Positions 9,440 to 61,300 of a DNA stretch of 64,000 nt are shown piece by piece (the stretch's first letter is position 1; each line of letters opens with the position of its first letter). The notes under the pieces are model-generated. The model was not told the DNA's origin and did not search any database. It saw only the letters and a program-made list of their open reading frames with translations. Made by a program: the position numbers and the translations under genes. Where the stretch lies: positions 1-64,000 of the IMG/VR virus record IMGVR_UViG_3300034050_000451, one strand, 5' to 3'.

Positions 9440-9835
9440 TTATTTAAATTCTATAACCTCAAATACTCTAGTTTGTATTCGTTTTGTACCATCTGTATTG
9501 GTAAGTATTATTGAGTTCTTAAATTTGGCCCAATCCAACATAAATTTGTTATCCAATACTCCATTATTTTCTTCTTTCACCAATTGGTTTAAAGCATTAA
9601 TTGTGTATAAGGTATTTGATTCTTTTTTTCTATGAATAAGAATTGTATCCTCTAATGGATATGTTGGTTTATATTCGGTATTGATATTGTACGTTATGTA
9701 CAATTCGGATAAATCAGTTTTGTTCTGTAAAATATAAATATAATTATAGACAATAACGTATGTCTCTCTTATATTTTGTAGAGTTTGTTGTAATCCATCT
9801 TTCGTTGTAAATGTACACAATAATTGTGTTTTCAT
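9440..9835 (-). CDS. hypothetical protein
   Basis: Clean 131-aa ORF with its own late motif at 9873-9881; no recognisable domain. Confidence 0.7.
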   Translation of the reverse strand: MKTQLLCTFTTKDGLQQTLQNIRETYVIVYNYIYILQNKTDLSELYITYNINTEYKPTYPLEDTILIHRKKESNTLYTINALNQLVKEENNGVLDNKFMLDWAKFKNSIILTNTDGTKRIQTRVFEVIEFK

Positions 9836-13221: not shown

Positions 13222-13253
13222 CAAATATACGAAAATTATTTGAATTTACCAAA
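13222..13253 (-). promoter_or_regulatory. Bacteroidota-type promoter for the polymerase-like gene
   Basis: TTTG-GTAAATTCAAATAATTTTCG-TATATTTG, 20-nt spacer. Confidence 0.75.
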
Positions 13254-46100: not shown

Positions 46101-49100
46101 AAATGATGAACCAGAAGATAAAATAACACTTCCACCAGTTACAAATAATCCACCACTTACACTAAGTGAACCAGATATAGATGTTTTTGTACCAACCTCA
46201 AATCCTTTATCAGGTGAAATTACCGCCTGAGTTGAACCAGATATAATTCTATCTAATTGAAGGTCTTGTAATGCGTTTGCAGGAATGTTAAATAATCCAC
46301 TACCATCTCCATCAAATCGAGATGCTGTTATTGGAACGTTTACATCTAATTTTAATGGGTCAATAATTGCTATACCAGAGCCAGAGTTAATTTTTACTAA
46401 TTGTAAATCTTCAAGTGCTTCTAATGGAATATTGAATAACCCACTACCATCACCACTAAATAAAGATGCCGATATTGAACCACTAATATCAACTGAACCC
46501 GTAAACTCAGAACCACTTCGTGCGGATTCTACTTTAAATCCAAAATTAGGTGAAACTGAAGCCGTTACTGAACCAGATGAAATTCTTGGAGATGCTGCAG
46601 CGGTTACGTTTGTGATAAAAGTACCATCACCAAATATAAATTTGTTTACATATATTGATTCAGATACATAAACTGAACCACTAAATTCGGATTTAATTGC
46701 TCTTAATGTAGTACCATCTAAAACTCTAAAGTGGCCATCAGTAGATACCGAAGCAGTAACGGAACCAGTGTAAATTCTAGAAGTATCAATTGCCAAATTA
46801 GCAATATCAATATTTGTCAATCCACTACCATCTCCAGTATAAATACCATCAATAGTTATTGAACCAGATACATCAATTGAACCAGTAAATTTAGAACCAC
46901 TATCCAAAGATTCAACTTTGAATCCTTCAGTTGGTGTTACGGATGCCGTAACTGAACCACTCACTAAACGATATACATCAAATGATAAGTTAGCAAGTGA
47001 AATATTAGTTAATCCACCACCATCTCCAAAGAATGAACCAGAGAATGAACCAGATAATTCATTTGCTTTTACAATACTTGAACTTATAGTTTGGGTTACA
47101 TATAAACTTCCACTTACATCAACTGAACCAGTAAATTCAGAACCACTTTCAGCTGATACTACTACAAATCCAAAATCAGGTGTTACTGATGCGGTTACAC
47201 TACCACTTTTAATTTCAGTTGAAATAAGTGCTTCAATTGCTTCAGTAGAAAGTGCGGTTAGTGGGATATTAAATAAGTTTTCACCACTACCACTAAATGA
47301 TGAACCACTAACAACCTCAATATTACCACTTACAAAAAGTGAACCACTAAATGTAGAACCACTTTCGATTGAAGTTACAACAAATCCGTTATCAGGTGTT
47401 ACTGATGCGGTAACTGAACCACTTGCGATTAAGTTTGATAAAAGTGCATCAGGCGTTAATGCTGCTCTTGGTATATCGAACAATCTAGCACCACTACCAC
47501 TAAACGATGAACCACTACTTAATTCTACTCCACCACTTACAAATAATGAACCTGTAAATTGTGAACCACTATCAATTGATTCTACTTTAAATCCAAACTC
47601 ATTCGAAACTGATGCCGTTACACTACCACTAGCCAATATTCCACTTTGGATTGCCAATAGTGAATTAATTGCATCTTGTGCATCAGGTGAAAATGCTGAT
47701 ATTGGGATATTGAATAAATCAGCTCCACTACCACTAAATGTTGAACCACTATTTATAGAAACACCACCACTTACAAAAAGTGAACCACTAAATGTAGAAC
47801 CACTTTCGATTGAAGTTACAACAAATCCGTTATTAGGGTTAACCGATGCCGTTACACTTCCACTAGCAATTAATGTTGCTGCTTCAGTAAGTGCTGATTG
47901 TGGGATATTAAATAATCCACTACCATCACCAGTGATTACACCATCAACAGTCAAAGAACCAGTTATTTTAACCGAACCAGTCATTTGTTGTATATCTGTC
48001 AATGAATCACCAAATATATTTGAACCAGAAGAATAAATTACTTCCGAATTTATAAACGTTACATTTATTTCTGTTGCGTTGATTGCCCCAGCTACATTTA
48101 AATCACCATCAATAGATGCGGATGTATTAACAACTAATCCTAAATTTGGTGAAATAGATGCAGTAGCAGAACCACTAGCAATTCTATTTGAATCTCCAGT
48201 TAAATTAGAAAAAGGAATATCGAATAAATTTCTACCACTACCACTAAATGAACCAGTTACTAATTCTATATTACCAAAGAATTTTGAACCACTTTCAATT
48301 GATGTTACAACAAATCCAGTATTTGGTGCTACTGATGCGGTAACTGAACCAGATGTAATAGTTGTACTAATAAGTGCATCAGGTGTTAGTGCTGTTCTTG
48401 GTATGTTAAATAATTTTGCACCACTACCAGAGAAAGAACCAGTTACCAATTGAACATCACCAAAGAAAGTTGAACCACTTACAACTGATGTTACAATAAA
48501 TCCATTTTGAGGGTGAGTTGATGCGGTAACCGAACCACTAAATATTTTAGAAGTATCTAAATCAGAAATTGCTGATTTTGGTATATCAAATAATCTTGCA
48601 CCACTACCAGAGAAAGAACCAGTTGCTAATTGAATATCACCAAAGAAAGTTGAACCACTTTGATATGATATAACAACAAACCCAGTATTTGGTGCTACCG
48701 ATGCAGTTACACTTCCACTTACAATGAATGATGAAAGTAACGCATCTTCAGTTAATGCTGAACGGGGGATATTTGTTAACCCCTCACCACTACCACTAAA
48801 GTATCCACTACCAGATAGAATTTTTACTTGCCCTAATACTTTAACAGAACCAGTAAATTGTGAACCACTATCCAATGATTCTACTTTGAATCCAAAATTA
48901 GGAGATACTGATGCAGTAACAGACCCACTTTGGATACGAGTTGATGCAATTACCTCTTCAGCAAATGCAGATAAAGGAATATTAGTTAATCCAGCTCCAC
49001 TACCACTAAAGAATGAACCAATATTAGCTTGTATGTTTCCATTTGCTATGATATCATCATTAGATACAATACCATTATTTGCTATTATATTACCATAGAA

Positions 49101-52088
49101 AGTTGAACCACTTTTGAAAGAATCAACTACAAAACCATTCTCATTTGAAACAGATGCAGTTATTTCACCATCTTGGATAATAGATATTTGAATATTAGTA
49201 ATTTGAGAACCATCTCCTGCAAAATTACCTCTAAATTCAGATGCAGTTACAAATGTATTAACTCTAACAGAACCAGTAAATTGTGAACCATATGCCTGAG
49301 ATGTAACTATAAATCCATTAGAATCATCAACTGAGGCAGTTACATTACCATCGGTAATTACAGGTATAGTTATATTTGTTAATCCACTACCATCACCTCT
49401 AAATAAAGATGCTGATACCGAACCAGATACATCTATTGAACCAGTAAATTCCGAACCACTTTGAGCCGAATTTACTACAAATCCAATATTAGGAGATACC
49501 GATGCCGTTACTGAACCTGATTTTATTTCAGTTGAAATAAGTGCATCTTCAGTTAATGCCGAACGAGGTATGTTTAATAACCCCTGCCCACTACCACTAA
49601 AGAATGAACCAGTTAATGCTTGAATAATACCACCACCACTTACAAATAATGAACCACTTACATTTACAGACCCAGTAACATAAACTGAACCTTTAAATGT
49701 AGAACCACTTAATGGTGATGTTACTACAAATCCATTTATATTATCAACAGATGCAGTTACTTGCCCATCTGCTATGAAATTTCTATTAATTACCTCTTCA
49801 GATAATGCTGATAATGGAATATTAAATAATCCCTCACCACTACCAGAGTAAAATGAACCAGATTTAAGAGTTACACTACCACTTACATCAATTGAACCAG
49901 TAAATTCAGAACCAAATTGTGCAGATTCTACTTTAAATCCAAAATTACTTCCAACAGAAGCCGTTACTGAACCGGTTGCTATCCTAGTAGCTTGAGCTAC
50001 TTGTTCAGCTAATGCAGATAATGGAATATTAAATAAACCAGCACCACTACCACTAAACATTGATGCAGTTACAGTTCCCCTTACATTAAGGTTATCTCTA
50101 AGTCTAACCGAACCTGTAAATTCCGAACCACTTGCAACTGAAATTACTTGAAATCCATTTTGTGGAGTTACCGATGCGGTAACTGAACCACTTGCTATTA
50201 TATTTGATAATTGTGCATCCGGTGTTAATGCTGCTCTTGGTATATTGAATAAACCAGCACCACTACCAGTAAACATCGATGCGGTTACATTACCAGCTAC
50301 TATAAGATTATCTCTAAATCTAACTGAACCACTAAATTGTGAACCACTTTGGATTGAAGTTACTACAAATCCAGCTTTAGGGTCAACGGATGCCGTTACA
50401 CTTCCACTTGTTATTAAATTTGATAATAATGCATCCGGTGTTAATGCTGCCCTAGGAATATCAAATAAACCAGCACCACTACCACTAAACATTGATGCGG
50501 ATACGTTTCCACTAACATCAACTGAACCTGTAAACTCAGAACCACTTTGTTGTGATTCAACTCTGAATCCAAAGTTTGGAGAAACAGACGCTGTTACTGA
50601 ACCCGATGATATAAATGTACTCAATAATGCATCAGGTGTTAATGCTGCTCTCGGAATATTAAATAAACCAGCACCACTACCACTAAAAATTGAACCACTA
50701 TTTATAGAAATACCACCACTTACAAATAATGAACCTGTAAATTGTGAACCGCTTTCGATTGAAGTTACAACAAATCCAGACTTAGGGTCAACCGATGCGG
50801 TTACACTTCCACTACTAATTAATGGTGATACAAGTGCATCAGGCGTTAAAGCTGCTCTCGGAATATTAAATAAACCAGCACCACTACCACTAAACATTGA
50901 TGCAGTTACATTACCATCTACATATACCGATGAGCTAAACTCTGCTCTATTGGTACCCTCTAATCTAAATCCATAATTTGGATTAACCGATGCCGTTACA
51001 CTTCCACTACCAATTAATGGAGAAACCAATGCATCCGGTGTTAATGCTGCCCTTGGAATATCGAATAAACCAGCACCACTACCAGTAAACATCGATGCGG
51101 TTACATTACCAGCTACAAATAGTGAAGAACTAAATTCTGCTCTATTGGTACCTTCTAATCGAAACCCATAATTTGGATTAACCGATGCGGTGACCGAACC
51201 TGATGTAATAAATGCCGACAGAAGAGCGTCAGGCGTTAAAGCTGCCCTCGGAATATCAAATAAGTTAGCACCACTACCACTAAATGATGAACCACTAACA
51301 ATTTCTATGTTTCCACTCACAAAAAGTGAAGAACTGAACTCTGCTCTTGTAGTTCCTTCTAATCTAAACCCATAAGATTCATTAACGGATGCCGTAACAG
51401 CCCCATCAACGATTCTTGGTGATTCTGCTGCCGCAGGAAGGTTAAATAACTTACTACCATCACCCTCAAAGAAGGATGCTGAAGCTGTATTTGATATGTA
51501 AACGTTATTACTGAATCTACCCTCACCATTTACATCAAATGAACCTGTAACTGATACAGAACCAGTGAATTCTTGTAAATCTACTAATGAATTTCCAAAT
51601 CGGTTTGACCCAGATGAAAAAATAATTGAAGATGATATGATTTGAACCAATATTTCTCTTGCAACTATCCTATTATTAACATATAAGTCACCAGTAACCC
51701 TAACATCACCATTTATATCCATATCACCATCAAAAGATGATGATACATTTACTAAAAATCCGGTTTGTGGTGAAATTGATGCCGATGCTGAACCAGAAAT
51801 TAATCTAGAAGCATCTTTTACTAAGGGTAAATTGGTTAATCGTGAACCATCTCCTTGAAATGAACCACTAAATGAACCACTATACTCAGGAAATTGTAAT
51901 TTTGTTACAAATAAACGATTACCAAACTCATCAGATGCTAATAAAGCAACTGAACCGCTCGATAAACTACCACTAATAGGTACCCCTAAATTAGGTTCTG
52001 CTTCATTCAGTTGAAGAAACTCATATCTATCTTCAGAAACATTCTGAGGAAGCGTTACTTTTACCTTACCACTTAATAATTGACTCAT
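40104..52088 (-). CDS. giant fibre protein (3994 aa): about 28 SGSVTASV shaft repeats, Gly-X-Y stalks, cupredoxin-like insert, C-terminal fibre domain
   Basis: Repeats as described; C-terminal TINLTTANNFRYT..TWPASVDWAGGIAPALT..DILVFYTYDGGTTYYG, followed by an LRR partner and a chaperone gene. Confidence 0.85.
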   Translation of the reverse strand: MSQLLSGKVKVTLPQNVSEDRYEFLQLNEAEPNLGVPISGSLSSGSVALLASDEFGNRLFVTKLQFPEYSGSFSGSFQGDGSRLTNLPLVKDASRLISGSASASISPQTGFLVNVSSSFDGDMDINGDVRVTGDLYVNNRIVAREILVQIISSSIIFSSGSNRFGNSLVDLQEFTGSVSVTGSFDVNGEGRFSNNVYISNTASASFFEGDGSKLFNLPAAAESPRIVDGAVTASVNESYGFRLEGTTRAEFSSSLFVSGNIEIVSGSSFSGSGANLFDIPRAALTPDALLSAFITSGSVTASVNPNYGFRLEGTNRAEFSSSLFVAGNVTASMFTGSGAGLFDIPRAALTPDALVSPLIGSGSVTASVNPNYGFRLEGTNRAEFSSSVYVDGNVTASMFSGSGAGLFNIPRAALTPDALVSPLISSGSVTASVDPKSGFVVTSIESGSQFTGSLFVSGGISINSGSIFSGSGAGLFNIPRAALTPDALLSTFISSGSVTASVSPNFGFRVESQQSGSEFTGSVDVSGNVSASMFSGSGAGLFDIPRAALTPDALLSNLITSGSVTASVDPKAGFVVTSIQSGSQFSGSVRFRDNLIVAGNVTASMFTGSGAGLFNIPRAALTPDAQLSNIIASGSVTASVTPQNGFQVISVASGSEFTGSVRLRDNLNVRGTVTASMFSGSGAGLFNIPLSALAEQVAQATRIATGSVTASVGSNFGFKVESAQFGSEFTGSIDVSGSVTLKSGSFYSGSGEGLFNIPLSALSEEVINRNFIADGQVTASVDNINGFVVTSPLSGSTFKGSVYVTGSVNVSGSLFVSGGGIIQALTGSFFSGSGQGLLNIPRSALTEDALISTEIKSGSVTASVSPNIGFVVNSAQSGSEFTGSIDVSGSVSASLFRGDGSGLTNITIPVITDGNVTASVDDSNGFIVTSQAYGSQFTGSVRVNTFVTASEFRGNFAGDGSQITNIQISIIQDGEITASVSNENGFVVDSFKSGSTFYGNIIANNGIVSNDDIIANGNIQANIGSFFSGSGAGLTNIPLSAFAEEVIASTRIQSGSVTASVSPNFGFKVESLDSGSQFTGSVKVLGQVKILSGSGYFSGSGEGLTNIPRSALTEDALLSSFIVSGSVTASVAPNTGFVVISYQSGSTFFGDIQLATGSFSGSGARLFDIPKSAISDLDTSKIFSGSVTASTHPQNGFIVTSVVSGSTFFGDVQLVTGSFSGSGAKLFNIPRTALTPDALISTTITSGSVTASVAPNTGFVVTSIESGSKFFGNIELVTGSFSGSGRNLFDIPFSNLTGDSNRIASGSATASISPNLGLVVNTSASIDGDLNVAGAINATEINVTFINSEVIYSSGSNIFGDSLTDIQQMTGSVKITGSLTVDGVITGDGSGLFNIPQSALTEAATLIASGSVTASVNPNNGFVVTSIESGSTFSGSLFVSGGVSINSGSTFSGSGADLFNIPISAFSPDAQDAINSLLAIQSGILASGSVTASVSNEFGFKVESIDSGSQFTGSLFVSGGVELSSGSSFSGSGARLFDIPRAALTPDALLSNLIASGSVTASVTPDNGFVVTSIESGSTFSGSLFVSGNIEVVSGSSFSGSGENLFNIPLTALSTEAIEALISTEIKSGSVTASVTPDFGFVVVSAESGSEFTGSVDVSGSLYVTQTISSSIVKANELSGSFSGSFFGDGGGLTNISLANLSFDVYRLVSGSVTASVTPTEGFKVESLDSGSKFTGSIDVSGSITIDGIYTGDGSGLTNIDIANLAIDTSRIYTGSVTASVSTDGHFRVLDGTTLRAIKSEFSGSVYVSESIYVNKFIFGDGTFITNVTAAASPRISSGSVTASVSPNFGFKVESARSGSEFTGSVDISGSISASLFSGDGSGLFNIPLEALEDLQLVKINSGSGIAIIDPLKLDVNVPITASRFDGDGSGLFNIPANALQDLQLDRIISGSTQAVISPDKGFEVGTKTSISGSLSVSGGLFVTGGSVILSSGSSFVGDGSGLTNINIANLSFETSLLQSGSFTTVLSPNFGLVVNASASVSGNLSVEKNIYAPVIYGGQITGSFYGGYYGEGDAEDRDILIYDAARSKYVPVPESTPTTAEPFTNVTEVTVVHNFDVDYPIVQVYEAGTNGMIIPQAIIPLDSDRVRVVFSGLTSGVVVVGSGGSKISGAISGNNVIGIVPSASRAISAETADTALNVAGIDSASLALLNDLQNFVRNEQTSSMTVLSSSFALTASYALNAGEAGSGGTDLFIYYTSSLVQTETGKINFTGSGVSVIDSGSDGILVTILGGGGTGDGDLLSSQTASMYVFSSSFASIAEYALNAVGGGSGTGFPFEGYAALTGSLNVSGSLIVTGSTFIQNLPLGSTNLVVTYNPTTGRLEQQSIDAAVGTSGVDGTSGTGGTSGTGGTSGTSGTSGTSGSSGTSGTSGTSGTSGTSGTSGTNGTSGSSGTSGTSGTSGTSGTSATSGTSGTSGTSGSSGSSGSSGTSGTSGTSGTSGTSATSGSSGTSGSSGSSGSSGTSGSSGSSGTSGSSGSSGSSGSSGTSGSSGSSGSSGSSGSSGTSGSSGSSGSSGTSGTSGSSGSSGSSGTSGSSGTSGSSGSSGTSGSSGSSGTSGTSGSSGTTGTSGSSGTSGTSGSSGTSGREGGRLFEVINDGFNYAFDGYDDATFPTLTLVRGELFYFDVSGVSASHPFALRLSSGNTSVVDGTINNDPLNGLAGTTDLIAYRVPEDAPNNIVYQCAVHSSMIGIIEIVDKNGTSGTSGTSGSSGTSGTSGTSGSSGTSGTSGSSGTSGSSGTSGTSGTSGSSGTSGSSGSSGSSGSSGSSGTSGSSGSSGSSGTSGSSGSSGSSGSSGTSGTSGSSGSSGTSGTSGESGSSGTSGSSGTSGVDGTSGSSGTSGLDGTSGTSGTSGTSGTSGTSGTSGTSGTSGTSGTSGENGSSGTSGSSGTSGTSGTSGTSGTSATSGTSGTNGTSGSSGTSGSSGSTGTDGTSGSSGSSGTSGTSGSNGTSGSSGTSGTSGSTGTDGTSGSSGTSGTSGSNGTSGSSGTSGSSGSTGSSGTSGTSGSSGTSGTSGSNGTSGSSGTSGSSGSTGTDGTSGSSGSSGTSGVDGTSGSSGTSGSTGTDGTSGSYGTSGTSGLSGSNGTSGTSGLNGTSGSSGTSGSSGSSGTNGTSGSSGISGTSGTSGSSGSSGTSGSSGTSGTSGTAGTSGLDGTLFGSSGTSGSSGSTGTSGSSGTSGTSGVDGTFFGSSGSSGTSGTSGSSGTSGLSGSSGTSGTSGTSGQDGTFFGSSGTSGTSGVGTNGTSGSSGTSGTSGTSGQDGTFFGSNGTAGTSGTSGSSGTSGSSGTAGTSGTSGQDGTLFGSSGTSGTSGQSGSSGTSGLGTNGTSGTSGQDGTLFGSSGTSGTSGQSGSSGTSGLGTNGTSGTSGQDGTLFGSSGTSGTSGESGSSGTSGIGTNGTSGTSGQDGTLFGSSGTSGTSGESGSSGTSGLGTNGTSGTSGQDGTLFGSSGTSGTSGESGSSGTSGLGTNGTSGTSGQDGTLFGSSGTSGTSGESGSSGTSGVGTNGTSGTSGQDGTLFGSSGTSGTSGESGSSGTSGVGTNGTSGTSGQDGTLFGSSGTSGTSGESGSSGTSGITGTAGTSGTSGQDGTLFGSSGTSGTSGIGTDGTSGITGTAGTSGTSGQDGTLFGSSGSSGTSGVSGSNGTSGIGTNGSSGTSGQDGTLFGSSGTSGTSGLGTNGTSGLGTNGTSGTSGQDGTLFGSSGTSGTSGSSGLGTNGSSGTAGTSGLDGTLFGSSGSSGTSGMAGSSGSSGLSGTSGITGDGGSSGTSGSSGISATITGTTNNGVLTLNGSSPNITAESGLTYDGTLLDVTGNATISGNITGNNVTANTSVYTPNFRELFSNLGTGGSVTINLTTANNFRYTANANVTYTFSNPPSSPQGFGFTLVYVNGGNFTTTWPASVDWAGGIAPALTANGTDILVFYTYDGGTTYYGFLSAANLS
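40610..43820 (-). repeat. Gly-X-Y collagen-like tract 2 (about 1070 aa), containing 17 x about 36-aa (108-bp) DGT(L/F)F units
   Basis: 17 DGTLF/DGTFF motifs between about 40730 and 42470; ccactacttccaaataaagttccatcttgtcc recurs 108 nt apart. Confidence 0.95.
44160..44920 (-). repeat. Gly-X-Y collagen-like tract 1 of the 3994-aa protein (about 250 aa)
   Basis: Uninterrupted GTS/GSS triplets. Confidence 0.95.
45900..51850 (-). repeat. about 28 tandem 55-75-aa shaft repeats (FxGxGxxLxxIP...SGSVTASV..GF.V.S..SGS.F.GS)
   Basis: Counted by eye in the translation; adjacent units near 50941 and 51136 are 195 nt apart and highly similar at DNA level. Confidence 0.9.
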
Positions 52089-52110: not shown

Positions 52111-52971
52111 TTACTCATTTGCACTTTCAAGAAGTGATAAAACTATTTTCAAATCGGTAGAACCTGAGAATAGTAATCCAAACTCTTGCTCTAATACTAA
52201 TTTACCAGCCACTACGGGTGAAAATGAATCACTTTTTGGGATAGGATAGTTCCTTACTAACTCTACCGCCTCTTGCGTTTCTCTCACCGGGTCATAAATA
52301 GTATCCGATATAACAGTAAATAGTTGAGAAATAATTTCTTGTGACCCAGTTTCTGCAATTAAACCATAATTGAATGATTGGGTGAAAATTGTTTGATAAA
52401 TTCTATCCACATTAACCGAACCAGTGATGGATTGGTTAATTAAAATTTGTTTTACTAATGTATCTGTATAATTAATTGCTTCGTAAGATGCCGTTACCTG
52501 TCCAGTTGGAACTAACGTTTCACCATTTTTATTATAAAATGATAAAGCTGCTTTATTTGTTCGGATAGTACCCCCATTTTGAATATCATAAACTACCGCA
52601 TTTACTGCAGTATCCACATATGCTTCATATCTAGATTGTGAAAATCCAAATGGAACTTCTGCTAAGTTATTATTGAAGTTAGTATAAGCTGCTACTTCTT
52701 TTTTCAAAAATGTTAAATTTTGTTCTAAAAGCGCTGATGCGCTATACATACTTCCGGTGTTGATAATTCCAGCAACTTGTGGTACTGGTATTTCTCTATT
52801 CGAAGCTAATTTAATTGTTACTTCTTCAGTTTGATTACCATTATTGGTAACTTGAGTCGATAGTATAATAGTAGATACACCACTCGGAGTGGTGTATACT
52901 TGGTCTTCTTCACCGGTTAGTGTCGTTACTACCGATTTGAATGCGTTAAGTGGTACAAATACGTCTGCCAT
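52111..52971 (-). CDS. virion-associated protein: 38042..38374-like beta domain with an inserted helical (globin-like) unit
   Basis: VYTTPS..IILSTQVTN and ELVRNYPIP..KLVLE..IVLSLLE flank NLTFLKKEVAAY..AVVYDIQNGGT..AINYTDTLVKQIL. Confidence 0.6.
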   Translation of the reverse strand: MADVFVPLNAFKSVVTTLTGEEDQVYTTPSGVSTIILSTQVTNNGNQTEEVTIKLASNREIPVPQVAGIINTGSMYSASALLEQNLTFLKKEVAAYTNFNNNLAEVPFGFSQSRYEAYVDTAVNAVVYDIQNGGTIRTNKAALSFYNKNGETLVPTGQVTASYEAINYTDTLVKQILINQSITGSVNVDRIYQTIFTQSFNYGLIAETGSQEIISQLFTVISDTIYDPVRETQEAVELVRNYPIPKSDSFSPVVAGKLVLEQEFGLLFSGSTDLKIVLSLLESANE

Positions 52972-52981
52972 AATTTTATTT

Positions 52982-55900
52982 TTATCCTTCTAATGCTAAT
53001 GAGAATGGTGTTACTAATGAGAACAATGAACGAGAGAATGTTCTACCTTGCAATGTTCCGGTTGCTTGATTAATTATAAGCCCCGTACCAATTTTAAAGT
53101 CACCAAGCTCGTTACCAGATGTAAAGTAAACTCTACCTCCAGCCAATTCGGTAATTTCTTTCGTTGGGTCAGCAACTCCAGCTCCACCCTGGTTAAAAGG
53201 TAATGCCTTATAAGTTACTCCAGCTCCAGAATAAGAAAAGTCATGTCCAGTAGTAATTATCAAAGAACCAAATTCTTCAACAGGAGCATTTCTCACTATT
53301 CTTTGGAATTGTGTTCTTAAATATCTATTAGTTTCAGCTGTTTCTTTCTTTTGTTCGTTTACAACTACTGCTGCTGAACCATATACCCCAGTATAATATG
53401 ATGATGCTGCTCTAACACTTCTTAGATTTCCACCATATAATAAATCCGTTGCTATTGCATCTACAATAAATCCAGTATCTCTATAACACTTTTCTTCATT
53501 ATAAACAAAGTTAGGAAATGCTCCAGCGGTATATGATATTGCGATTGATTGTAATGTTTTTTTACTTCCCCTTAATAAATCAACCGATAATTTTGTTTGG
53601 AATGATGGTCTTACTAATTGTTCTTTCAAAATTACCTTTTCAGCCATTCCCTTAGCAAAATCAATACCATCAATTGTTTGTGGTTTTTGTTTAGTTGTTG
53701 CTTCCGATGGAATATAGTAATAAAACGTTCCAGCCTTAATACTTCTTTCATTTCCACCATAAACTAAATCCGTTCTAGCTGCATCTATAATATACCCAAT
53801 ATCACGAGAACAACTTGCTTCATTATAATAAAATTCACTCCAAGATGATGAAAGATATTGAATTACTTCAGTTTGGATGAATCTTTTATTTCCAATTAAT
53901 AAATCAGCACCTACTAATACTGAAGCCGATGGTTGTACAAATTCTACATTTTGAATTACTTTTTGTGATAATCCACTTGCGTATATTATACCATCAACAG
54001 TTGGGTCCAATTGAGAAGTTGTTGAAGGAACTCCATTTTGAGTAGCCGCAGATGGGAATAGATAATAGAATGAACCAGCGGTTACACTTCTCTCATTTCC
54101 ACCATAATAAAGGTCAGTTGCAGCTGCATCAATTAAATAACCAACATCTCTCTTACACTTATCTTCATTATAATAAACACCACTCCAAGAAGATGATACA
54201 TAAGCGATTACCTCATTTTGGATAAACTCCTTATTATCTCTTAATAAATGCCAAGATGCAGATACTTCGTTTGAAGCAGTTACGAATTGAATATTTTGTG
54301 CTATTTTATTACTTAAACTAGCTGCGTATTTGATTCCATCTAATGTTTGATATAGTTGTGAACCAGTTGCCGCTGATGGGTATTCAAAATAGTATTTAGC
54401 ATTTACTACTGATGCTGATACTGAACCAAATAGTAAATCTTCAATTGCCCCACTTACAATTAATCCCACATCTCTACTACAACTAGCTTCATTGTATGCG
54501 AATCCACTCCAAGAAGAACTAATATATGCAATTACCTCATTTTGGATAAATGGTATATTTGATTTTATTAATGAATATGCTTGTAAAGTTCCAGAATCTA
54601 TTAACGATGCAGTATATTGAGAAATGGCTGGGAGTGAACCCGTTCCATTTGTTATAGTATTCATTACTAATCCAAATGATGAACTTAATGCGTTTAATAC
54701 ATTAATATTAGATGTACCTGCTCCACTTATTTGATTACTATTAGTAAATTTAATATTATTATTAGTATTTGAAGTTACAGTTGGTACTTGTAATATATTA
54801 TTTTGAATTAATTTGTTTATAATTGTTTTAACATATGATATTGCTTCAGTAGTTTCATTTAACTGAATAGTTGTAGCTTCAGATGGATATCTATAATAGT
54901 AATCAGCTGCTACAATACTTCTTTCGTTACCACCCCATAGTAAATCGGTTGCTATTGCATCTACAATGTAACCAACATCTCTTCTACACTTAGTTCTATT
55001 GTAAGTAAAGTATGGATATACTGAATCTATATAATAAATTACGTTTGTTTGTATTAATCCTTTATTATCTAATATTACATCATAATTTGCAATAGTTTCA
55101 GCACTTGCGGTTACTAATAAAGTATTTCTAACTATTTTATCAGCCAAACCAAATGCATGATTTACACCGGTGATTGTTTGGTCGGATTGAACCGAAGTAG
55201 CTTGTGATGGATATAAGTAATAAAACTCACCAGCAGTTACACTTCTTTCATTTCCACCATATAATACATCGGTTGCTACTGCATCTACAATATATCCTAC
55301 ATCTCTCTTACATTTAGATTCAATATATTCAAATCCACTCCAAGAAGAACTCATAAATGAAATTACTTCGTTTTGGATTAATAATTTGTTATCTAATAAT
55401 AAGTCATATGTAGTTTGTCTTTCTAATGAAGCAGTTACTAATGTTATATTATTAATTATTTTGTTAGTCAATCTTTGTGCGTATGTTACACCATCAACCG
55501 TTGGGTATAATTGAGCATCAACGCTTGGGGATGAACTTCCACTAACAGTTGCTGCTGATGGGAATAGGTAATAGAATGTTCCAGCGGTAATACTTCTTTC
55601 ATTTCCACCATAGTAGAAATCAGTTGCTACTGCATCTAAGATATATCCAACATCTCTACTACAACTTGCTTCGTTATATTGAAAATTACTCCAAGATGAA
55701 GAAATATATGAAATTACTTCATTTTGAATTAATGGTTTGTTATCGATTATTAAATTTGTTACACCAATGGTTTGTAATGAAGCAGTTACAAAGATATTAT
55801 TTTGTAATAACTGATTTACCATTCCTTTAGCGTAATTAATACCACTTAAAGTTGAATCTAATTGATTATTTTCAGATGGAACACCACCATTTGTTGCTCT

Positions 55901-58900
55901 TGATGGGAATAGATAATAGAATTCACCAGCTACTGAACTACGTTCATTTCCACCATATAAGGTATCAGTTGCTACTGCATCTAAAATATATCCAATATCA
56001 CGAGAACAACTTATATCATTGTATAATACACCACTCCAAGAAGATGATACATAAGAAACAACTTCCGATTGAATTAATGATTTATTTTCAACGATTAAAT
56101 CATATGCGTTTGTTCTACTATCAGGTGCTAATGCAAATTGATTATTTACAACAATATTTTGAACTAATCGTCTAGCATAATTAATACCATCCAATGTTGG
56201 GTATAATTGTGCTGCGGTTGTTGGAGATACACTACCACTAACAGTTGCAGATGATGGATATTTGTAATAGAATTCACCAGCGGTGTTACTTCTTTCATTT
56301 CCACCATATAATAAATCCGTAGAAACTGCATCAATTATATGTCCGATATCTCTTCTACATAATGATTCGTTATAATCGAATGTACTCCAAGAAGATGATA
56401 AGTAAGCGATAGTTTCACTCTTAACAAATTCTCTATTTTTTCTAATCAAATTATAAGATGCCGAAACCTCCATTGATGCGGTTTCAAAAATTATATTTTG
56501 AATTAATTTTTGTGTTAATTTACTTGCGTACTCAATACCATCTAATGTTTGGTTTATTTGAGTAGTTTCTGCTGCCGATGGGTATTCTAAATAATACTTA
56601 CCATTCACAATTGATGATGAAATAGTATTATATAATAAATCCTCAGCTGCTCCACTTACAATCAATCCAATATCTCTACTACAACTTGCTTCATTATATG
56701 AAGCCGTACTCCAAGAAGAAGATAAGTAAGATAAAGTTTCTATTTGAATAAATGGAATATTTTGCTTAATAATTTGATAAGCTGCTAATGTAGATGGTTG
56801 GGTTGAGGCCGCTCCATATAAACTAGCCGTAATATACGAACCACTGCCATTTGTAATGATTGTAGAAACGATTGATATCGAATTGGATACAAAGGTTACA
56901 TCTTCTAAACTAGCGCTTAAAGAGGCTGTAAATTGCTCTGTGCTACTAAACTTAGTTAATCCATTTATATTACTAATTTCAACCGGAATTGAACCAGTAC
57001 CATTTTTAATAATATTAATTATATTAGCAAAAGATGAACTTACGTTGTTAACCTGAGTTATACTTCCAGATTGTAATCCAATTATTTGAGGTACCGAAGT
57101 TACTTTAATTAAATCGTTAGTATTTTCAATTAATGCTGGAACTGAGCCCGTACCATTTGTTACTATATTAGTTACAATATTAAATGATGAACTTATAGTA
57201 TTTCTTAATGCCGATGATACCGCAAATGATGATGTATATTGTGATAGTTCACGTTTCTTAATTAATCCACTTACATTTGTAATTGTAGTTGGTAAATTAC
57301 TCACACCATTAAATAAAATATCAATTGTAGTTGCGAATGATGAACTTACTGATAATGATTCTGATATAGAAGCAGTATATATTGATTGAATTTGTGGTAT
57401 GTTAGTAACTTTAATATTATTAATAGTATTTGCTACAACCTCAAAATCACCCAATGATGGTATTTCAATATATCTTTGCGTATCTGAAATTGGTAACTCA
57501 TCAACAATATTAATAATTCCACTTGCTTCAATATCTTTACCATTTACATAGTATAAAGTATCAGGTGCATCGAATGGTACAATAAATGTTAAAGTTCCAA
57601 AGGTAACACCATTATTAGTTACACCTTTTGTATATTGATTTCTAAGACCTGGTTTTATATCAGTTTTAATATAAAATGGTCTAAAATCTAATTCAGTTGC
57701 ATTTACAATATTTAGTGAATTTACAGAGAATGTATAAAGTTCACCTCTCTTTAATGTTAAAGTAGGGTCTATACTACCATCTTCGATAGATGCAGTTAAT
57801 ACGTTATCAAATTTATTTAATTGATTTTCATTAAATAAATAATTTGCAGATTCAAATGCAATTACTTCATAATAAGTTGAGTATTCAGATGAACCACTTA
57901 AACTCAAACTTCCACTAATACCATATTTGATAATATCAGTTACAATTGAAAATGATGATGATACTTTTTGTATTTCAGTAGCACTAGCAGATATAGATGA
58001 TGTGATTTGTAAGCCATTACCAAATTTAATACCAGCTGCAGTATTTTTAACCAATTGAATTTCAGCAGGAATAGTTGTTCCAATAACAGTTGTTATTAAA
58101 TTACTTCCATATGAATTTTTAGGAATACCAACCGTTGAAATCGGAGCCCCATTTCTATCAGTTCCAATTGTTTGTTCGGTTGTAACTGAACTACCACTTT
58201 CAATTATTTTAATAATTGTATTAACGTTGTTAGAAATACTTTGAGTATTTGCGTTTGCTAACGTTGATTGAATTTGTGTTATACCACTAACATTTATTGG
58301 ATTATTTATATTCCAAATATAATCGTTTGAATTACCAACTATTGCCGATGGTATATAATCAGTTCCATATCTAATAATATCCTCAATAATACCAAATGAT
58401 TGTGATACTAATGTAACTTCAGTATTACTTGCAGATATAGATGATGTTACCGAATTAAATGCCGTAACTTTTATGTTACTATCAATATTTAATCCAATTT
58501 TTGGAGTTGGTAATATTTCTGATATTAAAATTTTATCGGTTAACGCATTTACATATTGAAGTGCATTTATTGTTTCAGTTAATTGAGTAGTATTTGCTAC
58601 TGATGGAAATAAGAAATAATATAATCCAGCAGTTTCAGTTCTTTCATTACCACCATACAATAAATCAGTTGTAATATTATCAACAATGTATCCAACATCT
58701 CTTCTACATTTAGCTTGGTTATAATCTAAATTAGGATATTGAGTATTGATATATGTAATAGTTTCAGTTTGAATTAAACTACGATTTTTTCTCATTAAAT
58801 CAACAGCCCCAATTACAGAATTAGATGCCGTTACAAATGTATCGTTGTTTAATAATTTTTCAGTTAATCGTTTAGCATATCTAATAGCATCTAATGTTTG

Positions 58901-61300
58901 ATTTAACTGAGTAGTTGTTGCCTCCGATGGATATCTAAAGTAGAATTGTCCAGCAGTTACACTTCGGTCGTTACCTTCATATTTTAAATCAGTTCCTACT
59001 GCATCTAAAATATATCCAATATCACGTGAACAACTTACCTCATTATATTCGAATTCAGACCAAGATGATGAAATATATGCAATGGTTTCTGCTCTAACAA
59101 AATCTTTGTTATTAAAAATAATATTATATCCATTATTAATATTAGCGGATGATGTTATGTATTGATTTCCTTTTAAAATATTTTGTGCAACACCACTTGC
59201 GTATTTAACCGCAGTTAATGTTGGTTCTAATTGAGTTGTAGTAGCTTCAGATGGATATAAGTAATAAAATCTTGCACTCTTTATAGATTCTTCATTTCCA
59301 CCATAAAGAATATCATATGCAGCTCCACTTACAATATATGAAATATCTCTCTTACAAGTTGTTTCATTATATGAAAACTCACTCCAAGACGAACTCATAT
59401 ATGCAATAGTTTCAGATTGTATAAATGGTATATTATTTATAAGTAAATTATATGCGTTTTGTTTTTCACTTGATGTGCTAGCATTTGAACTACTTGGTAT
59501 AATTGTAGGTAAATCACCAGTCCCATATTCAATAGTATCATACACAATTGAAAATGATGATGATACCGAATTTATTGTTTGTAAAGATGATGTTGTACCT
59601 GTTTGATATTGGTTTACATTACTAAATTTAAAACTAGCAGATGTATTACTTACAATATTTGGAGCTATACCACCAGCTACAATAGACATAATTGTATCAA
59701 AACTATTATTAGTTGTAGTAATTGTAGGTGAATCTACAGCTGAGGTTTTGTATTGAACAATATCAGTTGCTTGAATTGAATGAGATACATTTGATATACG
59801 AACATATGATTCGGTTGCAGGATTTCCTCTTTCAATTATATCATATAATATATTAAAATTAGTATCAACACTTGCAATATTTTGTAATGATGCGGTTGTT
59901 GATGAAGTATATTGATTTTCACCAGAAATATTGTAAACAGATTGCGATGAATATCCATTTATACTACTTTTTGCAATTAAACTTGGTTTATTTACAATTC
60001 CATTGTCAATAATTGAACTTATTAATTTAAAATCAGCTTTAACTATATCAGACACTTCATTCGAAGAATCTTCCGATAAAAAGTATTGTGGTAAAACATT
60101 AGGGTCAGTTACTCTAATTCCGTTTTCAGTATTTGGTACCAATGCAGGAATCGTAGATAATCCACCTTCAATAGTATTAACAATAATTGAGTAATTATCT
60201 TGTACATTTAAGAACGCATCAAAGTTACCACCACTACCCGTAATAAAACGTGAACCAGATGCGTACATACCATAATCACCAAATGAGGTGTTAGAGTTAA
60301 GTAATACCGCATGTCCACCATCGATAACTTTTACTGAATATGCTGAGAAGTTTGTGAAGAATGATACCAACTGAATGAATCCCCTTCCAACAACTTGACA
60401 ACCCACACCATTTGGTGCAACCTGTGTATATGCATCCAATACCATAGAGGCTAATGGAGAATCAGGATGGATTCTATTTCCATCTACGTTCAATCCACCA
60501 CCTCCAGCAGGAATATCCTCATACAGCTCAAGGAATGAGTTCTCCTGATTTGAAATCATAGAACAGTTCTGAACGTATGGTGATGTTGTAATAAATGCGT
60601 TTGGTGCGAATGCAATTGCGAATCCACTTTGAGAATCATCAACCGATGGATATACTCTCAAACCAGCAAATGTCATCTCAGCAAGATAACAACCACTATT
60701 TACCCAAAATAAATCTTCGTTTTCGTTTTTAGCAATAATTTTAGTTACCCTTAATCCAGCTCCCCAAACAGTTGTGTTTCTTGGAAGTTCAATTGGGTTT
60801 TCTTCTAAATAAGTACCCGCATCAACAGTGATTCTAAATCCACTAAAAAGAGAACCAGTTGGTAAACCATATCTACCATCATCACCCGGAGTTGCTAATT
60901 GAGCAGCTTTCTTAATAGTTCTTAATGGAAATTGCGGTGAAGTACCACTATTATTATCATTACCATTTGTAGATGATACATAGATAGTTGAATCACTTTT
61001 TGCAAAATCCTCAACTAATATTCCACCAAATCTTTGTGTATCAACCGATATATCAGAAAAAGATGCAGTTGCATCCAATCTACTTGCCGCATTGGCAAAT
61101 GATAATGCACCATCAATTTGTAATGACCCAGTAATTTCAACCGAACCAGTTATTCTTTGCTTATCCGAAGTACGAGTACCAATATCAATACTTTGTGATA
61201 CTAATAAAGAGCCAGATATAAATACAGAGTTGCCTACGGATATACTATCCCTAAACTGATTTACTTCTTCTATTTGTTTCTGTGGTATTAATCTAGCCAT
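52982..61300 (-). CDS. giant virion structural protein (2772 aa): beta-helix (pectin-lyase-like) N-domain, 13 phycobiliprotein-like repeats, cupredoxin-like insert
   Basis: IYVSSTNGNDNNSG..PLRTIKKA..DAGTYLEENPIELP..TVWG; 13 x YNExxCxRDxGYxxDAxxxDLxYGGNERS; C-terminal GHDFSYSGAG..GGRVYFTSGNELGDFKIG. Confidence 0.8.
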   Translation of the reverse strand: MARLIPQKQIEEVNQFRDSISVGNSVFISGSLLVSQSIDIGTRTSDKQRITGSVEITGSLQIDGALSFANAASRLDATASFSDISVDTQRFGGILVEDFAKSDSTIYVSSTNGNDNNSGTSPQFPLRTIKKAAQLATPGDDGRYGLPTGSLFSGFRITVDAGTYLEENPIELPRNTTVWGAGLRVTKIIAKNENEDLFWVNSGCYLAEMTFAGLRVYPSVDDSQSGFAIAFAPNAFITTSPYVQNCSMISNQENSFLELYEDIPAGGGGLNVDGNRIHPDSPLASMVLDAYTQVAPNGVGCQVVGRGFIQLVSFFTNFSAYSVKVIDGGHAVLLNSNTSFGDYGMYASGSRFITGSGGNFDAFLNVQDNYSIIVNTIEGGLSTIPALVPNTENGIRVTDPNVLPQYFLSEDSSNEVSDIVKADFKLISSIIDNGIVNKPSLIAKSSINGYSSQSVYNISGENQYTSSTTASLQNIASVDTNFNILYDIIERGNPATESYVRISNVSHSIQATDIVQYKTSAVDSPTITTTNNSFDTIMSIVAGGIAPNIVSNTSASFKFSNVNQYQTGTTSSLQTINSVSSSFSIVYDTIEYGTGDLPTIIPSSSNASTSSEKQNAYNLLINNIPFIQSETIAYMSSSWSEFSYNETTCKRDISYIVSGAAYDILYGGNEESIKSARFYYLYPSEATTTQLEPTLTAVKYASGVAQNILKGNQYITSSANINNGYNIIFNNKDFVRAETIAYISSSWSEFEYNEVSCSRDIGYILDAVGTDLKYEGNDRSVTAGQFYFRYPSEATTTQLNQTLDAIRYAKRLTEKLLNNDTFVTASNSVIGAVDLMRKNRSLIQTETITYINTQYPNLDYNQAKCRRDVGYIVDNITTDLLYGGNERTETAGLYYFLFPSVANTTQLTETINALQYVNALTDKILISEILPTPKIGLNIDSNIKVTAFNSVTSSISASNTEVTLVSQSFGIIEDIIRYGTDYIPSAIVGNSNDYIWNINNPINVSGITQIQSTLANANTQSISNNVNTIIKIIESGSSVTTEQTIGTDRNGAPISTVGIPKNSYGSNLITTVIGTTIPAEIQLVKNTAAGIKFGNGLQITSSISASATEIQKVSSSFSIVTDIIKYGISGSLSLSGSSEYSTYYEVIAFESANYLFNENQLNKFDNVLTASIEDGSIDPTLTLKRGELYTFSVNSLNIVNATELDFRPFYIKTDIKPGLRNQYTKGVTNNGVTFGTLTFIVPFDAPDTLYYVNGKDIEASGIINIVDELPISDTQRYIEIPSLGDFEVVANTINNIKVTNIPQIQSIYTASISESLSVSSSFATTIDILFNGVSNLPTTITNVSGLIKKRELSQYTSSFAVSSALRNTISSSFNIVTNIVTNGTGSVPALIENTNDLIKVTSVPQIIGLQSGSITQVNNVSSSFANIINIIKNGTGSIPVEISNINGLTKFSSTEQFTASLSASLEDVTFVSNSISIVSTIITNGSGSYITASLYGAASTQPSTLAAYQIIKQNIPFIQIETLSYLSSSWSTASYNEASCSRDIGLIVSGAAEDLLYNTISSSIVNGKYYLEYPSAAETTQINQTLDGIEYASKLTQKLIQNIIFETASMEVSASYNLIRKNREFVKSETIAYLSSSWSTFDYNESLCRRDIGHIIDAVSTDLLYGGNERSNTAGEFYYKYPSSATVSGSVSPTTAAQLYPTLDGINYARRLVQNIVVNNQFALAPDSRTNAYDLIVENKSLIQSEVVSYVSSSWSGVLYNDISCSRDIGYILDAVATDTLYGGNERSSVAGEFYYLFPSRATNGGVPSENNQLDSTLSGINYAKGMVNQLLQNNIFVTASLQTIGVTNLIIDNKPLIQNEVISYISSSWSNFQYNEASCSRDVGYILDAVATDFYYGGNERSITAGTFYYLFPSAATVSGSSSPSVDAQLYPTVDGVTYAQRLTNKIINNITLVTASLERQTTYDLLLDNKLLIQNEVISFMSSSWSGFEYIESKCKRDVGYIVDAVATDVLYGGNERSVTAGEFYYLYPSQATSVQSDQTITGVNHAFGLADKIVRNTLLVTASAETIANYDVILDNKGLIQTNVIYYIDSVYPYFTYNRTKCRRDVGYIVDAIATDLLWGGNERSIVAADYYYRYPSEATTIQLNETTEAISYVKTIINKLIQNNILQVPTVTSNTNNNIKFTNSNQISGAGTSNINVLNALSSSFGLVMNTITNGTGSLPAISQYTASLIDSGTLQAYSLIKSNIPFIQNEVIAYISSSWSGFAYNEASCSRDVGLIVSGAIEDLLFGSVSASVVNAKYYFEYPSAATGSQLYQTLDGIKYAASLSNKIAQNIQFVTASNEVSASWHLLRDNKEFIQNEVIAYVSSSWSGVYYNEDKCKRDVGYLIDAAATDLYYGGNERSVTAGSFYYLFPSAATQNGVPSTTSQLDPTVDGIIYASGLSQKVIQNVEFVQPSASVLVGADLLIGNKRFIQTEVIQYLSSSWSEFYYNEASCSRDIGYIIDAARTDLVYGGNERSIKAGTFYYYIPSEATTKQKPQTIDGIDFAKGMAEKVILKEQLVRPSFQTKLSVDLLRGSKKTLQSIAISYTAGAFPNFVYNEEKCYRDTGFIVDAIATDLLYGGNLRSVRAASSYYTGVYGSAAVVVNEQKKETAETNRYLRTQFQRIVRNAPVEEFGSLIITTGHDFSYSGAGVTYKALPFNQGGAGVADPTKEITELAGGRVYFTSGNELGDFKIGTGLIINQATGTLQGRTFSRSLFSLVTPFSLALEG
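53300..59450 (-). repeat. 13 copies of an about 105-115-aa helical repeat with invariant C-x-R-D
   Basis: Cys (TGT) codons at + coordinates 59354, 59030, 58706, 56681, 56357, 56006, 55661, 55310, 54986, 54479, 54155, 53810 and 53486. Confidence 0.95.

Follow-up and report, generated by a model that had tools for sequence, protein, structure and literature searches.

A giant fibre-type protein of 2772 residues, encoded by a phage that probably infects Bacteroidota, carries thirteen copies of a domain that is, as judged from sequence profiles, a real homologue of the phycobiliproteins (PBPs) and not a chance look-alike. The domain represents a previously unannotated family, a truncated homologue of the PBP/bilin-binding-globin fold. 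The open reading frame (ORF) list and translation place the whole repeat region within one ORF of the window (the full 64,000-nucleotide stretch that was analysed), where the initial annotation had noticed thirteen repeats, all with the motif Cys-x-Arg-Asp (C-x-R-D). The exact count in the translated protein is indeed 13, compared with 0.02 expected by chance from its composition and a maximum of 1 in 2000 shuffles, and the motif is found in none of the remaining ORFs of the window. The motif Cys residues (positions 649, 757, 865, 1540, 1648, 1765, 1880, 1997, 2105, 2274, 2382, 2497 and 2605) account for 13 of the 16 Cys of the entire protein.

The thirteen units, each of 108-117 residues and with their motifs in register, extend over window positions 53273-59476. 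They are 28-63% identical to one another, are constant at Y36, C41, R43, D44, D55, Y71, S76, A78, Q82 and T86, and are each matched by the family HMM with E values of 1e-33 to 1e-41. Since Tandem Repeats Finder detects no repeat at the DNA level in this region, the copies are old. They do not form the single tandem run first supposed; instead three arrays of 3, 6 and 4 units are separated by 563 and 57 residues of other sequence (Table 1). Sequence searches of the PDB with the N-terminal 600 residues, the spacer insert and the C-terminus returned nothing informative. The region at residues ~98-350, which probably forms a beta-helix-type domain for attachment or with enzymatic function, is covered by phrog_17885 (tail fiber; residues 103-349) and also matches phrog_29288, with only a weak match in the PDB and none in Pfam; the 563-residue spacer has no match in either. 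The C-terminal ~95 residues have no PDB match, and residues 2679-2771 align to positions 3876-3966 of the 3967 positions of the phrog_3442 profile.

Table 1. Features of the giant fibre-type gene and its downstream neighbour, in window coordinates; Cys codons of R4-R13 are given by their first base.
Feature	Position	Cys codon	Strand	Basis
Fibre-type giant virion protein, 2772 aa, bearing all 13 C-x-R-D domains	52982..61300		-	phrog_4527, phrog_5342; gene context
N-terminal region, aa ~98-350, common to other phage tail-fibre proteins	60251..61009		-	phrog_17885, phrog_29288
Array 1, PBP-like repeats R1-R3	58493..59476		-	motif, register, family HMM
R1	59153-59476	59354-59356	-	
R2	58829-59152	59030-59032	-	
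R3	58493-58828	58706-58708	-	
Spacer between arrays 1 and 2, 563 aa	56804..58492		-	several ~65-75-aa modules with terminal SSSF motif; also an insert that is not a repeat
Array 2, PBP-like repeats R4-R9	54773..56803		-	motif, register, family HMM
R4	56480-56803	56681	-	
R5	56129-56479	56357	-	
R6	55784-56128	56006	-	
R7	55433-55783	55661	-	
R8	55109-55432	55310	-	
R9	54773-55108	54986	-	
Spacer between arrays 2 and 3, 57 aa, one SSSF-type linker module	54602..54772		-	motif listing
Array 3, PBP-like repeats R10-R13	53273..54601		-	motif, register, family HMM
R10	54278-54601	54479	-	
R11	53933-54277	54155	-	
R12	53609-53932	53810	-	
R13	53273-53608	53486	-	
C-terminal ~95 aa, common to C-termini of other giant phage proteins	52985..53272		-	phrog_3442
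Downstream neighbour gene, 286 aa, with 14th PBP-like domain	52111..52971		-	deep HMM, E=1e-20

The relationship to PBPs was first suspected from an alignment of repeat 3 to the C-phycocyanin alpha chromophore helix with about 11 of 22 residues identical, and comparison with cpcA sequences taken from plasmids of cyanobacteria reproduces exactly 11/22, gap-free, around Cys84. The later helix TINALQYV, likewise noted at first as a match, lies at Cys+45, the same offset as cpcA residues 129-136. A profile built from the thirteen window repeats alone finds seven matches in the PDB, all of them alpha-phycocyanins and with Cys41 of the repeat placed on Cys84, in agreement with the original proposal that the repeat Cys is the bilin-site Cys. 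When the profile is deepened to 33 sequences (repeats of the window phage, S-PM2, P-HM2 and two metagenomic contigs) and run against all PDB sequences, the top 43 matches are all PBPs, six of them below 1e-3, the best being CpcA 8iml_A at E=6.2e-5. Alignment by hhalign to eight PBPs gains significance with query depth, from P=2.5e-5 with 13 sequences to 8e-7 with 33 and 1.3e-7 with 992 family copies; in the deepest alignment repeat positions 5-102 are set on phycocyanin alpha 37-143 with 94% probability, and the reversed-template control gives P=0.22.

Repeat-to-PBP sequence identity is 12-20%, and a search with the Pfam family that the initial annotation had named did not succeed: PF00502 gives no match to the whole 2772-residue protein at E<=1 and matches one of the 13 single repeats at E=0.027, short of the gathering score. 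Pfam and NCBIfam together assign no usable family to the whole protein or to single repeats. The missed Pfam family, the low identity and Foldseek E-values above 0.1 would all fit a convergent or artefactual resemblance, in which a short helix matches by chance and AlphaFold is drawn to a memorised PBP fold. This explanation is nevertheless very improbable, given that significance grows with profile depth to E=6e-5 database-wide and P=1e-7 pairwise, that ~98 columns align well beyond the motif whereas the reversed control fails, that the register is gap-free from Cys84 through helix G, and that models in BFVD built from other alignments have the same fold.

Structure prediction leads to the same family. 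Two AlphaFold models of repeat R8 (pLDDT 86.3 and 87.3; pTM 0.78 and 0.80) contain 5-6 helices in 108 residues, and in Foldseek searches of the PDB with the two models PBPs make up 50/50 and 48/50 of the top matches, with probabilities of 0.9-1.0 and query-normalised TM-scores (TMq) up to 0.80. The E-values of these matches are only 0.1-1, and the argument from Foldseek draws on their rank, their probability and the TM-scores; the target-normalised TM-score to PBPs is ~0.45-0.55. Models of cyanophage tail proteins in BFVD, which are independent of these two, match the repeat fold with TMq of 0.78-0.86. The predicted core is globin-like but truncated: the repeat keeps helices B, E, F and G and lacks both the X/Y hairpin and the H helix. 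Of the initial claim of globin/phycobilin-fold domains, then, the homology and the predicted core stand, but a full PBP is not present, as the missing X/Y and H elements and the failure of PF00502 make plain.

Set beside the PBPs, especially C-phycocyanin alpha (PF00502), the repeat shares the same predicted globin-like helical core, and the helix corresponding to helix E bears a C-x-R-D that aligns with Cys84/Arg86/Asp87. The repeat differs in being 108-117 residues long, compared with ~162-177 for a PBP, and in scoring under the Pfam threshold. It also lacks the alpha-beta interface residues D13, R93 and Y97, which are invariant in the PBP alignment and whose repeat equivalents are D50 or variable. 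The B-E loop, which in PBPs covers the bilin, is ~9 residues shorter in the repeat, a feature that counts against a bilin reading, as do the missing X/Y and H elements and the lack of conservation at R93 and Y97. Finally, the PBP is a soluble antenna subunit whereas the repeat is strung in tandem in a virion protein.

Conservation of the Cys-x-Arg-Asp site was followed in 992 full-length family copies from metagenomes, among which C is conserved at 95%, R at 96% and D at 99%. In copies that have the Cys, R43 is retained in 98.4%, D44 in 99.9%, Y71 in 99.8% and T86 in 93%; in the 46 copies without it these values fall to 54%, 72%, 67% and 41%, while D55 and N15 are still at 100%. Because Cys, Arg and Asp are lost jointly while fold residues persist, the conserved triad points to a ligand site. 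A natural example lies next door to the giant gene, where residues 74-186 of the 286-residue neighbour protein (window 52414-52749) form a 14th PBP-like domain; in its HMM alignment all three residues of the Cys/Arg/Asp triad have been substituted, but D55, the helices and the GG turn are retained. This protein also has a weak match to phrog_4527, in the part of the profile that the repeats match as well. Since the fold signature persists in the 14th copy and in the 46 family copies that have lost the triad, folding does not require the triad. Cys elsewhere in the family proteins is rare (0.33% outside the motif), and the conserved repeat positions include no equivalent of a proximal His.

That the repeats belong to a virion protein, as initially proposed, is borne out by both homology and location. 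Two tail-fibre families match the 2772-residue protein, phrog_4527 in 12 stretches (E=2e-113) and phrog_5342 in 14 stretches (E=7e-108), and so does phrog_17885; its cyanophage matches are annotated as tail fiber, gp7 or virion structural protein; the phage itself is uncultured and the "virion structural protein" label of its homologues is a database annotation. Its gene lies within a neck and tail module, with gp13- and gp15-like neck genes upstream and two more giant fibres, a tail-fibre assembly chaperone, sheath, tube and baseplate hub downstream. The host is probably a member of the Bacteroidota, as was also thought at first, to judge from a T9SS sorting domain, promoters of the TTTG-N20-TAnnTTTG type and a tail sheath like that of Flavobacterium phages. 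A cyanobacterial host was considered because the best tail-sheath match is a Microcystis phage, and was rejected since the T9SS sorting domain and promoter type favour Bacteroidota.

In GenBank the domain is found at 930 places in 353 of 50,697 phage records; among the matches listed the carriers are only T4-like cyanophages, and the carrier proteins are gp7, short tail fibres and virion structural proteins. The domain is present in tail proteins of most T4-like cyanophages, which bears out the initial annotation's mention of similar repeats in giant structural proteins of T4-like aquatic phages. The family as a whole comprises 1274 representative proteins with 1 to 36 copies per protein. A scan of genome contigs with a narrow pattern yielded only two loci, both on contigs of ~50 kb that resemble phage DNA and were binned with a Rhodobacteraceae MAG; given so narrow a pattern, the scan argues only weakly that cells lack the domain. 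The giant cyanophage proteins (phrog_4527, phrog_5342 and phrog_701; S-PM2 p091 and a 3779-residue fibre, P-HM2 gp7, S-CAM1 SXBG_00073) share with the window protein the same domain family, CXRD site, predicted fold and placement in the tail module, and none of them is annotated as PBP-like. However, these carriers infect cyanobacteria and many encode cpeT, ho1, pebS or pcyA, whereas the window phage is a freshwater phage of ~271 kb with a probable Bacteroidota host and with none of these bilin genes in ~163 kb.

In many Synechococcus phages a lyase-like gene, cpeT, closely precedes the domain. The genes of S-PM2 and S-CAM1 run gp5 ... cpeT, 2OG oxygenase, giant CXRD fibre, and among the matches listed cpeT lies 1.5-6.5 kb from the repeat match on the same strand in ~17 named Synechococcus phages. 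This synteny reflects shared ancestry among related phages and not independent events; in P-HM2 cpeT is ~35 kb away from the repeat-bearing gp7, and cpeT occurs in 113 GenBank phage records versus the 353 with the domain. S-PM2, P-HM1 and P-HM2 all bear the domain, and P-HM1 and P-HM2 encode ho1, pebS and cpeT (PMC3037559).

Whether the repeats bind a bilin is, on the sequence evidence, an evenly balanced question to which a positive answer is plausible. In PBPs and in BBAG-1/3, members of the bilin biosynthesis-associated globins (BBAGs) of heterotrophic bacteria, CXRD is established as the bilin motif, and BBAGs attach bilins, biliverdin included, without lyases (PMC10151467). The BBAGs are PBP paralogues outside photosynthesis, some with CXRD (Rockwell et al. 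2023, PMC10151467), and their lyase-free attachment is the mechanism that a Bacteroidota phage would need. The comparison with them is by description, together with a Foldseek match to 8u0f, "bacterial fluorescent protein"; BBAGs are single-domain and cytoplasmic, and their genes lie beside heme oxygenase and pre-PcyA, whereas the phage domain forms repeats within a virion protein, near which neither of these genes was found. The PBP fold is capable of autocatalysis, since smURFP, derived from allophycocyanin-alpha, self-attaches biliverdin, and it can photoswitch, as in the photochromic PBP subunit alpha-phycoerythrocyanin; for the phage domain both are functional analogies only.

In the mechanism proposed here the repeats, strung together, would make up the shaft of a giant virion protein that is a fibre or is associated with the baseplate, each domain binding a linear tetrapyrrole covalently through a thioether at its Cys. 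For the Bacteroidota phage the simplest ligand would be biliverdin from the host, and for cyanophages PEB or PCB, with attachment either autocatalytic as in BBAGs or, in cyanophages, assisted by CpeT from the adjacent gene. Virion fibres would then bear tens to hundreds of bilins. The most attractive role for such a pigment would be light-gated adsorption through light-dependent fibre behaviour, the alternatives being a structural cofactor or photoprotection; pigment function is the weakest step of the proposal. The initial idea that the array mimics phycobilisome surfaces finds nothing in the analysis to support it.

No bilin genes were found in the 64-kb window, just as originally reported, and extending the search did not uncover any: in ~163 kb (~60%) of the ~271-kb genome the precomputed Pfam hits include no family of heme oxygenases, ferredoxin-dependent bilin reductases or CpeT/CpeS-type lyases, and phmmer finds no CpeT in the same ~163 kb. 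The likely host makes no phycobilins. The lack of bilin genes in 60% of the genome would suit a pigment-free structural module, a PBP- or globin-derived rigid helical block that sets fibre length, with C-x-R-D, Y71 and T86 kept for inter-domain or inter-chain contact, a metal ion or hydrogen-bond network on the fibre axis being one option, comparable to the ion-binding motifs of T4 fibres. A copy number ranging from 1 to 36 would likewise befit a length-setting module. The loss of the X/Y and H helices and PBP interface residues also speaks for this reading, as does the occurrence of the domain far more commonly than cpeT. Such a module is a credible reading toward which we do not lean: the triad is dispensable for folding, as the 14th copy and the 46 family copies show; a pure scaffold would not usually keep a single Cys at 95% in extracellular proteins otherwise poor in Cys; and the residues conserved are exactly the triad that contacts the bilin in the homologous family (PMC10151467).

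A ligand site of another kind, for heme or another cofactor, for a host surface ligand in receptor-binding units, or for a Cys crosslink to a partner protein, is decidedly unlikely. The globin superfamily does bind heme, weak DosC globin-sensor matches appear low in the Foldseek list, and the protein is of fibre/adhesin type; however, a proximal-His equivalent is missing from the conserved positions, all significant sequence and structure matches are to bilin-binding PBPs and none to heme globins, and receptor-binding domains are usually variable and distal rather than conserved internal repeats.

Bilin binding by the repeats, if true, would mean phage particles with pigments of their own. To our knowledge this is known for no virus; the literature search found no report of pigmented phage particles and no paper linking phage fibres to the PBP fold. 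It would also offer a testable answer to why cyanophages and phages of heterotrophs encode bilin-synthesis and CpeT genes, whose purpose "remains a mystery" and is "unresolved" (Sullivan 2010, PMC3037559) or "still enigmatic" (2024 Nat Commun, PMC11480375), and to why some cyanomyoviruses adsorb only in light. Adsorption of S-PM2, P-HM1 and P-HM2 is light-dependent and independent of host photosynthesis. The full extension of the idea, that CXRD repeats are biliproteins on the baseplate and fibres of T4-like aquatic phages, the true clients of phage ho1/pebS/pcyA/pcyX/cpeT and a light sensor explaining adsorption of these three phages, is speculative and on balance unlikely. Even without a pigment, the repeats define a large unannotated domain family of 1274 representative proteins, in which the PBP fold has been recruited into virion architecture and which reaches beyond the cyanophages to a probable Bacteroidota phage.

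The repeats lie in a single gene, encoding a fibre-type protein that carries 13 C-x-R-D motifs, the number given in the initial annotation. These account for 13 of its 16 cysteines, against a chance expectation from composition of 0.02 and a maximum of one in 2000 shuffles of the 2772-aa protein, and the motif is absent from all other ORFs of the window. The units are in register and 28-63% identical pairwise, with Y36, C41, R43, D44, D55, Y71, S76, A78, Q82 and T86 invariant (C41/R43/D44 align to Cys84/Arg86/Asp87 of C-phycocyanin alpha); rather than the single tandem run first described, they form three arrays (R1-R3, R4-R9 and R10-R13) separated by 563 and 57 aa. DNA-level repetition was not detected in the gene, and the 13 copies are therefore old. 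A fourteenth copy in the adjacent downstream gene has the Cys, Arg and Asp all substituted and keeps D55, the GG turn and the helices in the family HMM alignment. The 2772-aa protein also contains a second repeat type (IKF/IKV ... SSSF ... NGTGS-P), without database match, one or more modules of which precede every phycobiliprotein-like array, the preceding module ending in an SSSF motif. An ORF antisense to the gene is without support and probably spurious.

Features of the window (positions are those of the window)
Feature	Position	Strand	Size	Basis or remark
Repeat-bearing ORF	52982-61300	minus	2772 aa	ORF call and translation
Thirteen repeat units (R1-R13)	53273-59476		108-117 aa each	motifs in register
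SSSF modules	54602-54772, 56804-58492, about 59474-59698	minus	~65-75 aa each	motif listing
Antisense ORF	55852-56175	plus	107 aa
Gene with fourteenth copy	52111-52971			copy at aa 74-186; family HMM, E=1e-20
Giant fibre	26246-38029	minus	3927 aa	collagen-like/tail-fibre PHROG repeats
Giant fibre	40104-52088	minus	3994 aa	collagen-like/tail-fibre PHROG repeats
Cohesin and Por_Secre_tail protein	5722-7626	minus	634 aa	type IX secretion C-terminal sorting, PF18962
S-adenosylmethionine decarboxylase match	9440-9835	minus	131 aa	PF02675
Genes with TTTG-N20-TAnnTTTG promoters upstream	11952-13217, 13236-14213
ORFs with upstream A/T motif	ending 869, 7626, 9835, 23129, 23729, 26118, 38706

Homology of the repeats to phycobiliproteins is well supported and very probable, a claim carried by sequence statistics. 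Real cpcA/B, cpeA/B and apc genes from cyanobacterial plasmids served for comparison. The proposed identity of R3 to the chromophore helix (about 11/22) holds, with 11 of 22 residues agreeing without gaps in the Cys84 region of two real cpcA sequences, and the later helix also proposed as a match lies at Cys+45 in repeat and cpcA alike. Support grows with profile depth. Against all PDB sequences, a profile of the 13 repeats gives seven matches at E<=10, all alpha-phycocyanins (E 0.4-1) that place Cys41 on Cys84, and one of 33 repeats, including copies from the cyanophages S-PM2 and P-HM2 and two metagenomic contigs, has phycobiliproteins as its top 43 matches, now at database-wide significance (CpcA best, E=6.2e-5; six below 1e-3). 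Profile-profile comparison with eight real phycobiliproteins yields P=2.5e-5 with 13 sequences, 8e-7 with 33 and 1.3e-7 (probability 94%) with 992 copies, the last alignment spanning repeat residues 5-102 and phycocyanin alpha residues 37-143; the reversed-template control gives P=0.22.

Two AlphaFold models of repeat R8 from different alignments (pLDDT 86.3 and 87.3, pTM 0.78 and 0.80) have five or six helices, and in Foldseek searches of the PDB, the check suggested initially, phycobiliproteins are 50/50 and 48/50 of the top matches, with probability about 0.9-1.0 and query-normalised TM-score up to 0.80; since the E-values are only 0.1-1, rank and TM-score are the basis for the fold. In BFVD, confident matches are limited to tail and structural proteins of cyanophages (TMq 0.78-0.86), whose models are independent predictions of the fold predicted for R8. 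The repeat shares helices B, E, F and G with phycobiliproteins, but has neither X/Y hairpin nor H helix; its B-E loop is ~9 residues shorter and interface residues D13, R93 and Y97 are not retained. NCBIfam has no model for the domain, and the Pfam PF00502 threshold is not reached. The domain falls outside the phycobiliprotein family proper and represents a new family in the bilin-binding-globin superfamily, truncated and repeated in tandem.

When 1.84 billion representative proteins were searched with a profile, 1274 matched at E<=1e-3, 518 of them at E<=1e-30; the best 150 of the 1274 are mostly giant, with up to 36 copies each, and the cluster members sampled are all "hypothetical protein" or unnamed. 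No prior description of the family was found in the literature searched. Among 50,697 GenBank phage records the window repeats match 101, and a P-HM2 repeat matches 353 (930 places), a majority of the roughly 450 cyanomyovirus records matched by the tail sheath, in keeping with the similar repeats in T4-like aquatic phages mentioned in the initial annotation. The matches listed are exclusively Synechococcus or Prochlorococcus myoviruses or unnamed marine viruses, and those annotated are gp7 baseplate wedge initiator, short tail fibre, tail fibre-like or virion structural protein. In a species-genome collection, a scan with a narrow pattern gave only two loci, both on phage-like contigs of ~50 kb (FZLS01000013.1 and FZLS01000012.1) that are binned as "Rhodobacteraceae bacterium Water_Bin34". 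Each contig encodes a protein of ~3,700 aa carrying 11 or more CXRD repeats, and a collagen/Peptidase_S74 fibre gene comes next. The two probably represent phage sequence mis-binned into a MAG, or a prophage.

Metagenome contigs of 242.9 to 270.8 kb, present in several JGI samples and in one NCBI assembly, carry the same genes as the window. The genome is T4-like (gp23, portal, gp13, gp15, sheath, tube, gp32, UvsX-like and RNR genes), and the repeat protein is flanked by neck genes on one side and on the other by two ~3,900-4,000-aa fibres with many collagen-like repeats. In the genes of these two fibres the local GC rises to 0.41-0.45, the GC skew is strongly negative and there are long antisense ORFs, which are spurious. 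The host is likely a member of the Bacteroidota because of a T9SS sorting domain, the best clue, which suggests phage use of the host T9SS, together with the promoter type, the GC content (about 29-35% outside fibre genes) and Flavobacterium phages among the best tail-sheath matches. A recurring TATATTTATA-like A/T motif lies 20-50 nt ahead of several structural genes and may be a phage late promoter; it differs from the TTTG-N20-TATATTTG promoters of host type. The decarboxylase match looks like a speD-type auxiliary gene, also listed among sporadic cyanophage genes in a paper on cyanophages. Glycosyltransferase, sugar-nucleotide, methyltransferase and APS-kinase genes form a large block in the genome flanks, which also contain two Mom-like genes, a DruA-family gene, a ribosomal protein S21 gene and a 1490-aa cytidylyltransferase-domain protein.

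In S-PM2 and S-CAM1 the order is gp5, tRNAs, cpeT, 2OG-Fe(II) oxygenase and then a 3,700-3,800-aa fibre with CXRD repeats in its N-terminal part. In about 17 named Synechococcus phages, coordinate comparison of the matches listed places cpeT 1.5-6.5 kb from the repeat match and on its strand, an adjacency kept down to 36% CpeT identity; this synteny is inherited and does not reflect independent events. It is absent from P-HM1, P-HM2 and MED4-213, whose repeats are located in gp7. In the S-PM2 record (NC_006820.1, 165928-177267), 16 tRNA features are annotated within the CDS of the 3779-aa fibre; these coordinates look misplaced, as ARAGORN finds no tRNA there, the ORF is intact and the real tRNAs lie upstream, flanking cpeT. 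One paper describes the role of phage cpeT as "unresolved" and the role of pebS/pcyA as "a mystery" (PMC3037559); for hemO together with pcyA/X in heterotroph phages, the word used is "enigmatic" (PMC11480375). P-HM1 and P-HM2, which also carry ho1, pebS and cpeT, do not adsorb in the dark, and light-dependent adsorption of S-PM2 is independent of host photosynthesis; the domain is present in all three. Both cyanophage leads, gene order and light adsorption, are correlations from a handful of phages.

Over 992 full-length copies, C41 (95%), R43 (96%), D44 (99%), D55 (100%) and Y71 (98%) are conserved, and Cys outside the motif makes up only 0.33% of residues. In the 46 copies without the Cys, R43 falls from 98.4% to 54%, D44 from 99.9% to 72%, Y71 from 99.8% to 67% and T86 from 93% to 41% (Fisher p 1e-17 to 1e-21), and D55 and N15 (99.8% and 87% in copies with Cys) are at 100%. 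The Cys/Arg/Asp site with Y71 and T86 thus behaves as a unit. The fold does not require the triad, since these 46 copies and the fourteenth copy keep the fold residues; the triad is under selection as a functional site. The main rival, that the repeats are a structural module without pigment, is less probable than bilin binding. Heme oxygenase, bilin reductase and lyase genes were sought and none found in the window, as noted initially, or in the ~163 kb covered of the ~271-kb genome. In homologous families the triad is the bilin site, the Cys forming a thioether and the Arg and Asp holding the chromophore, and triad-carrying BBAG-1/3, bilin biosynthesis-associated globins of heterotrophic bacteria, attach bilin without lyases (PMC10151467). 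From homology and site conservation, the best-supported reading, with about an even chance of being right, is that a bilin would be covalently bound at the conserved Cys of each repeat.
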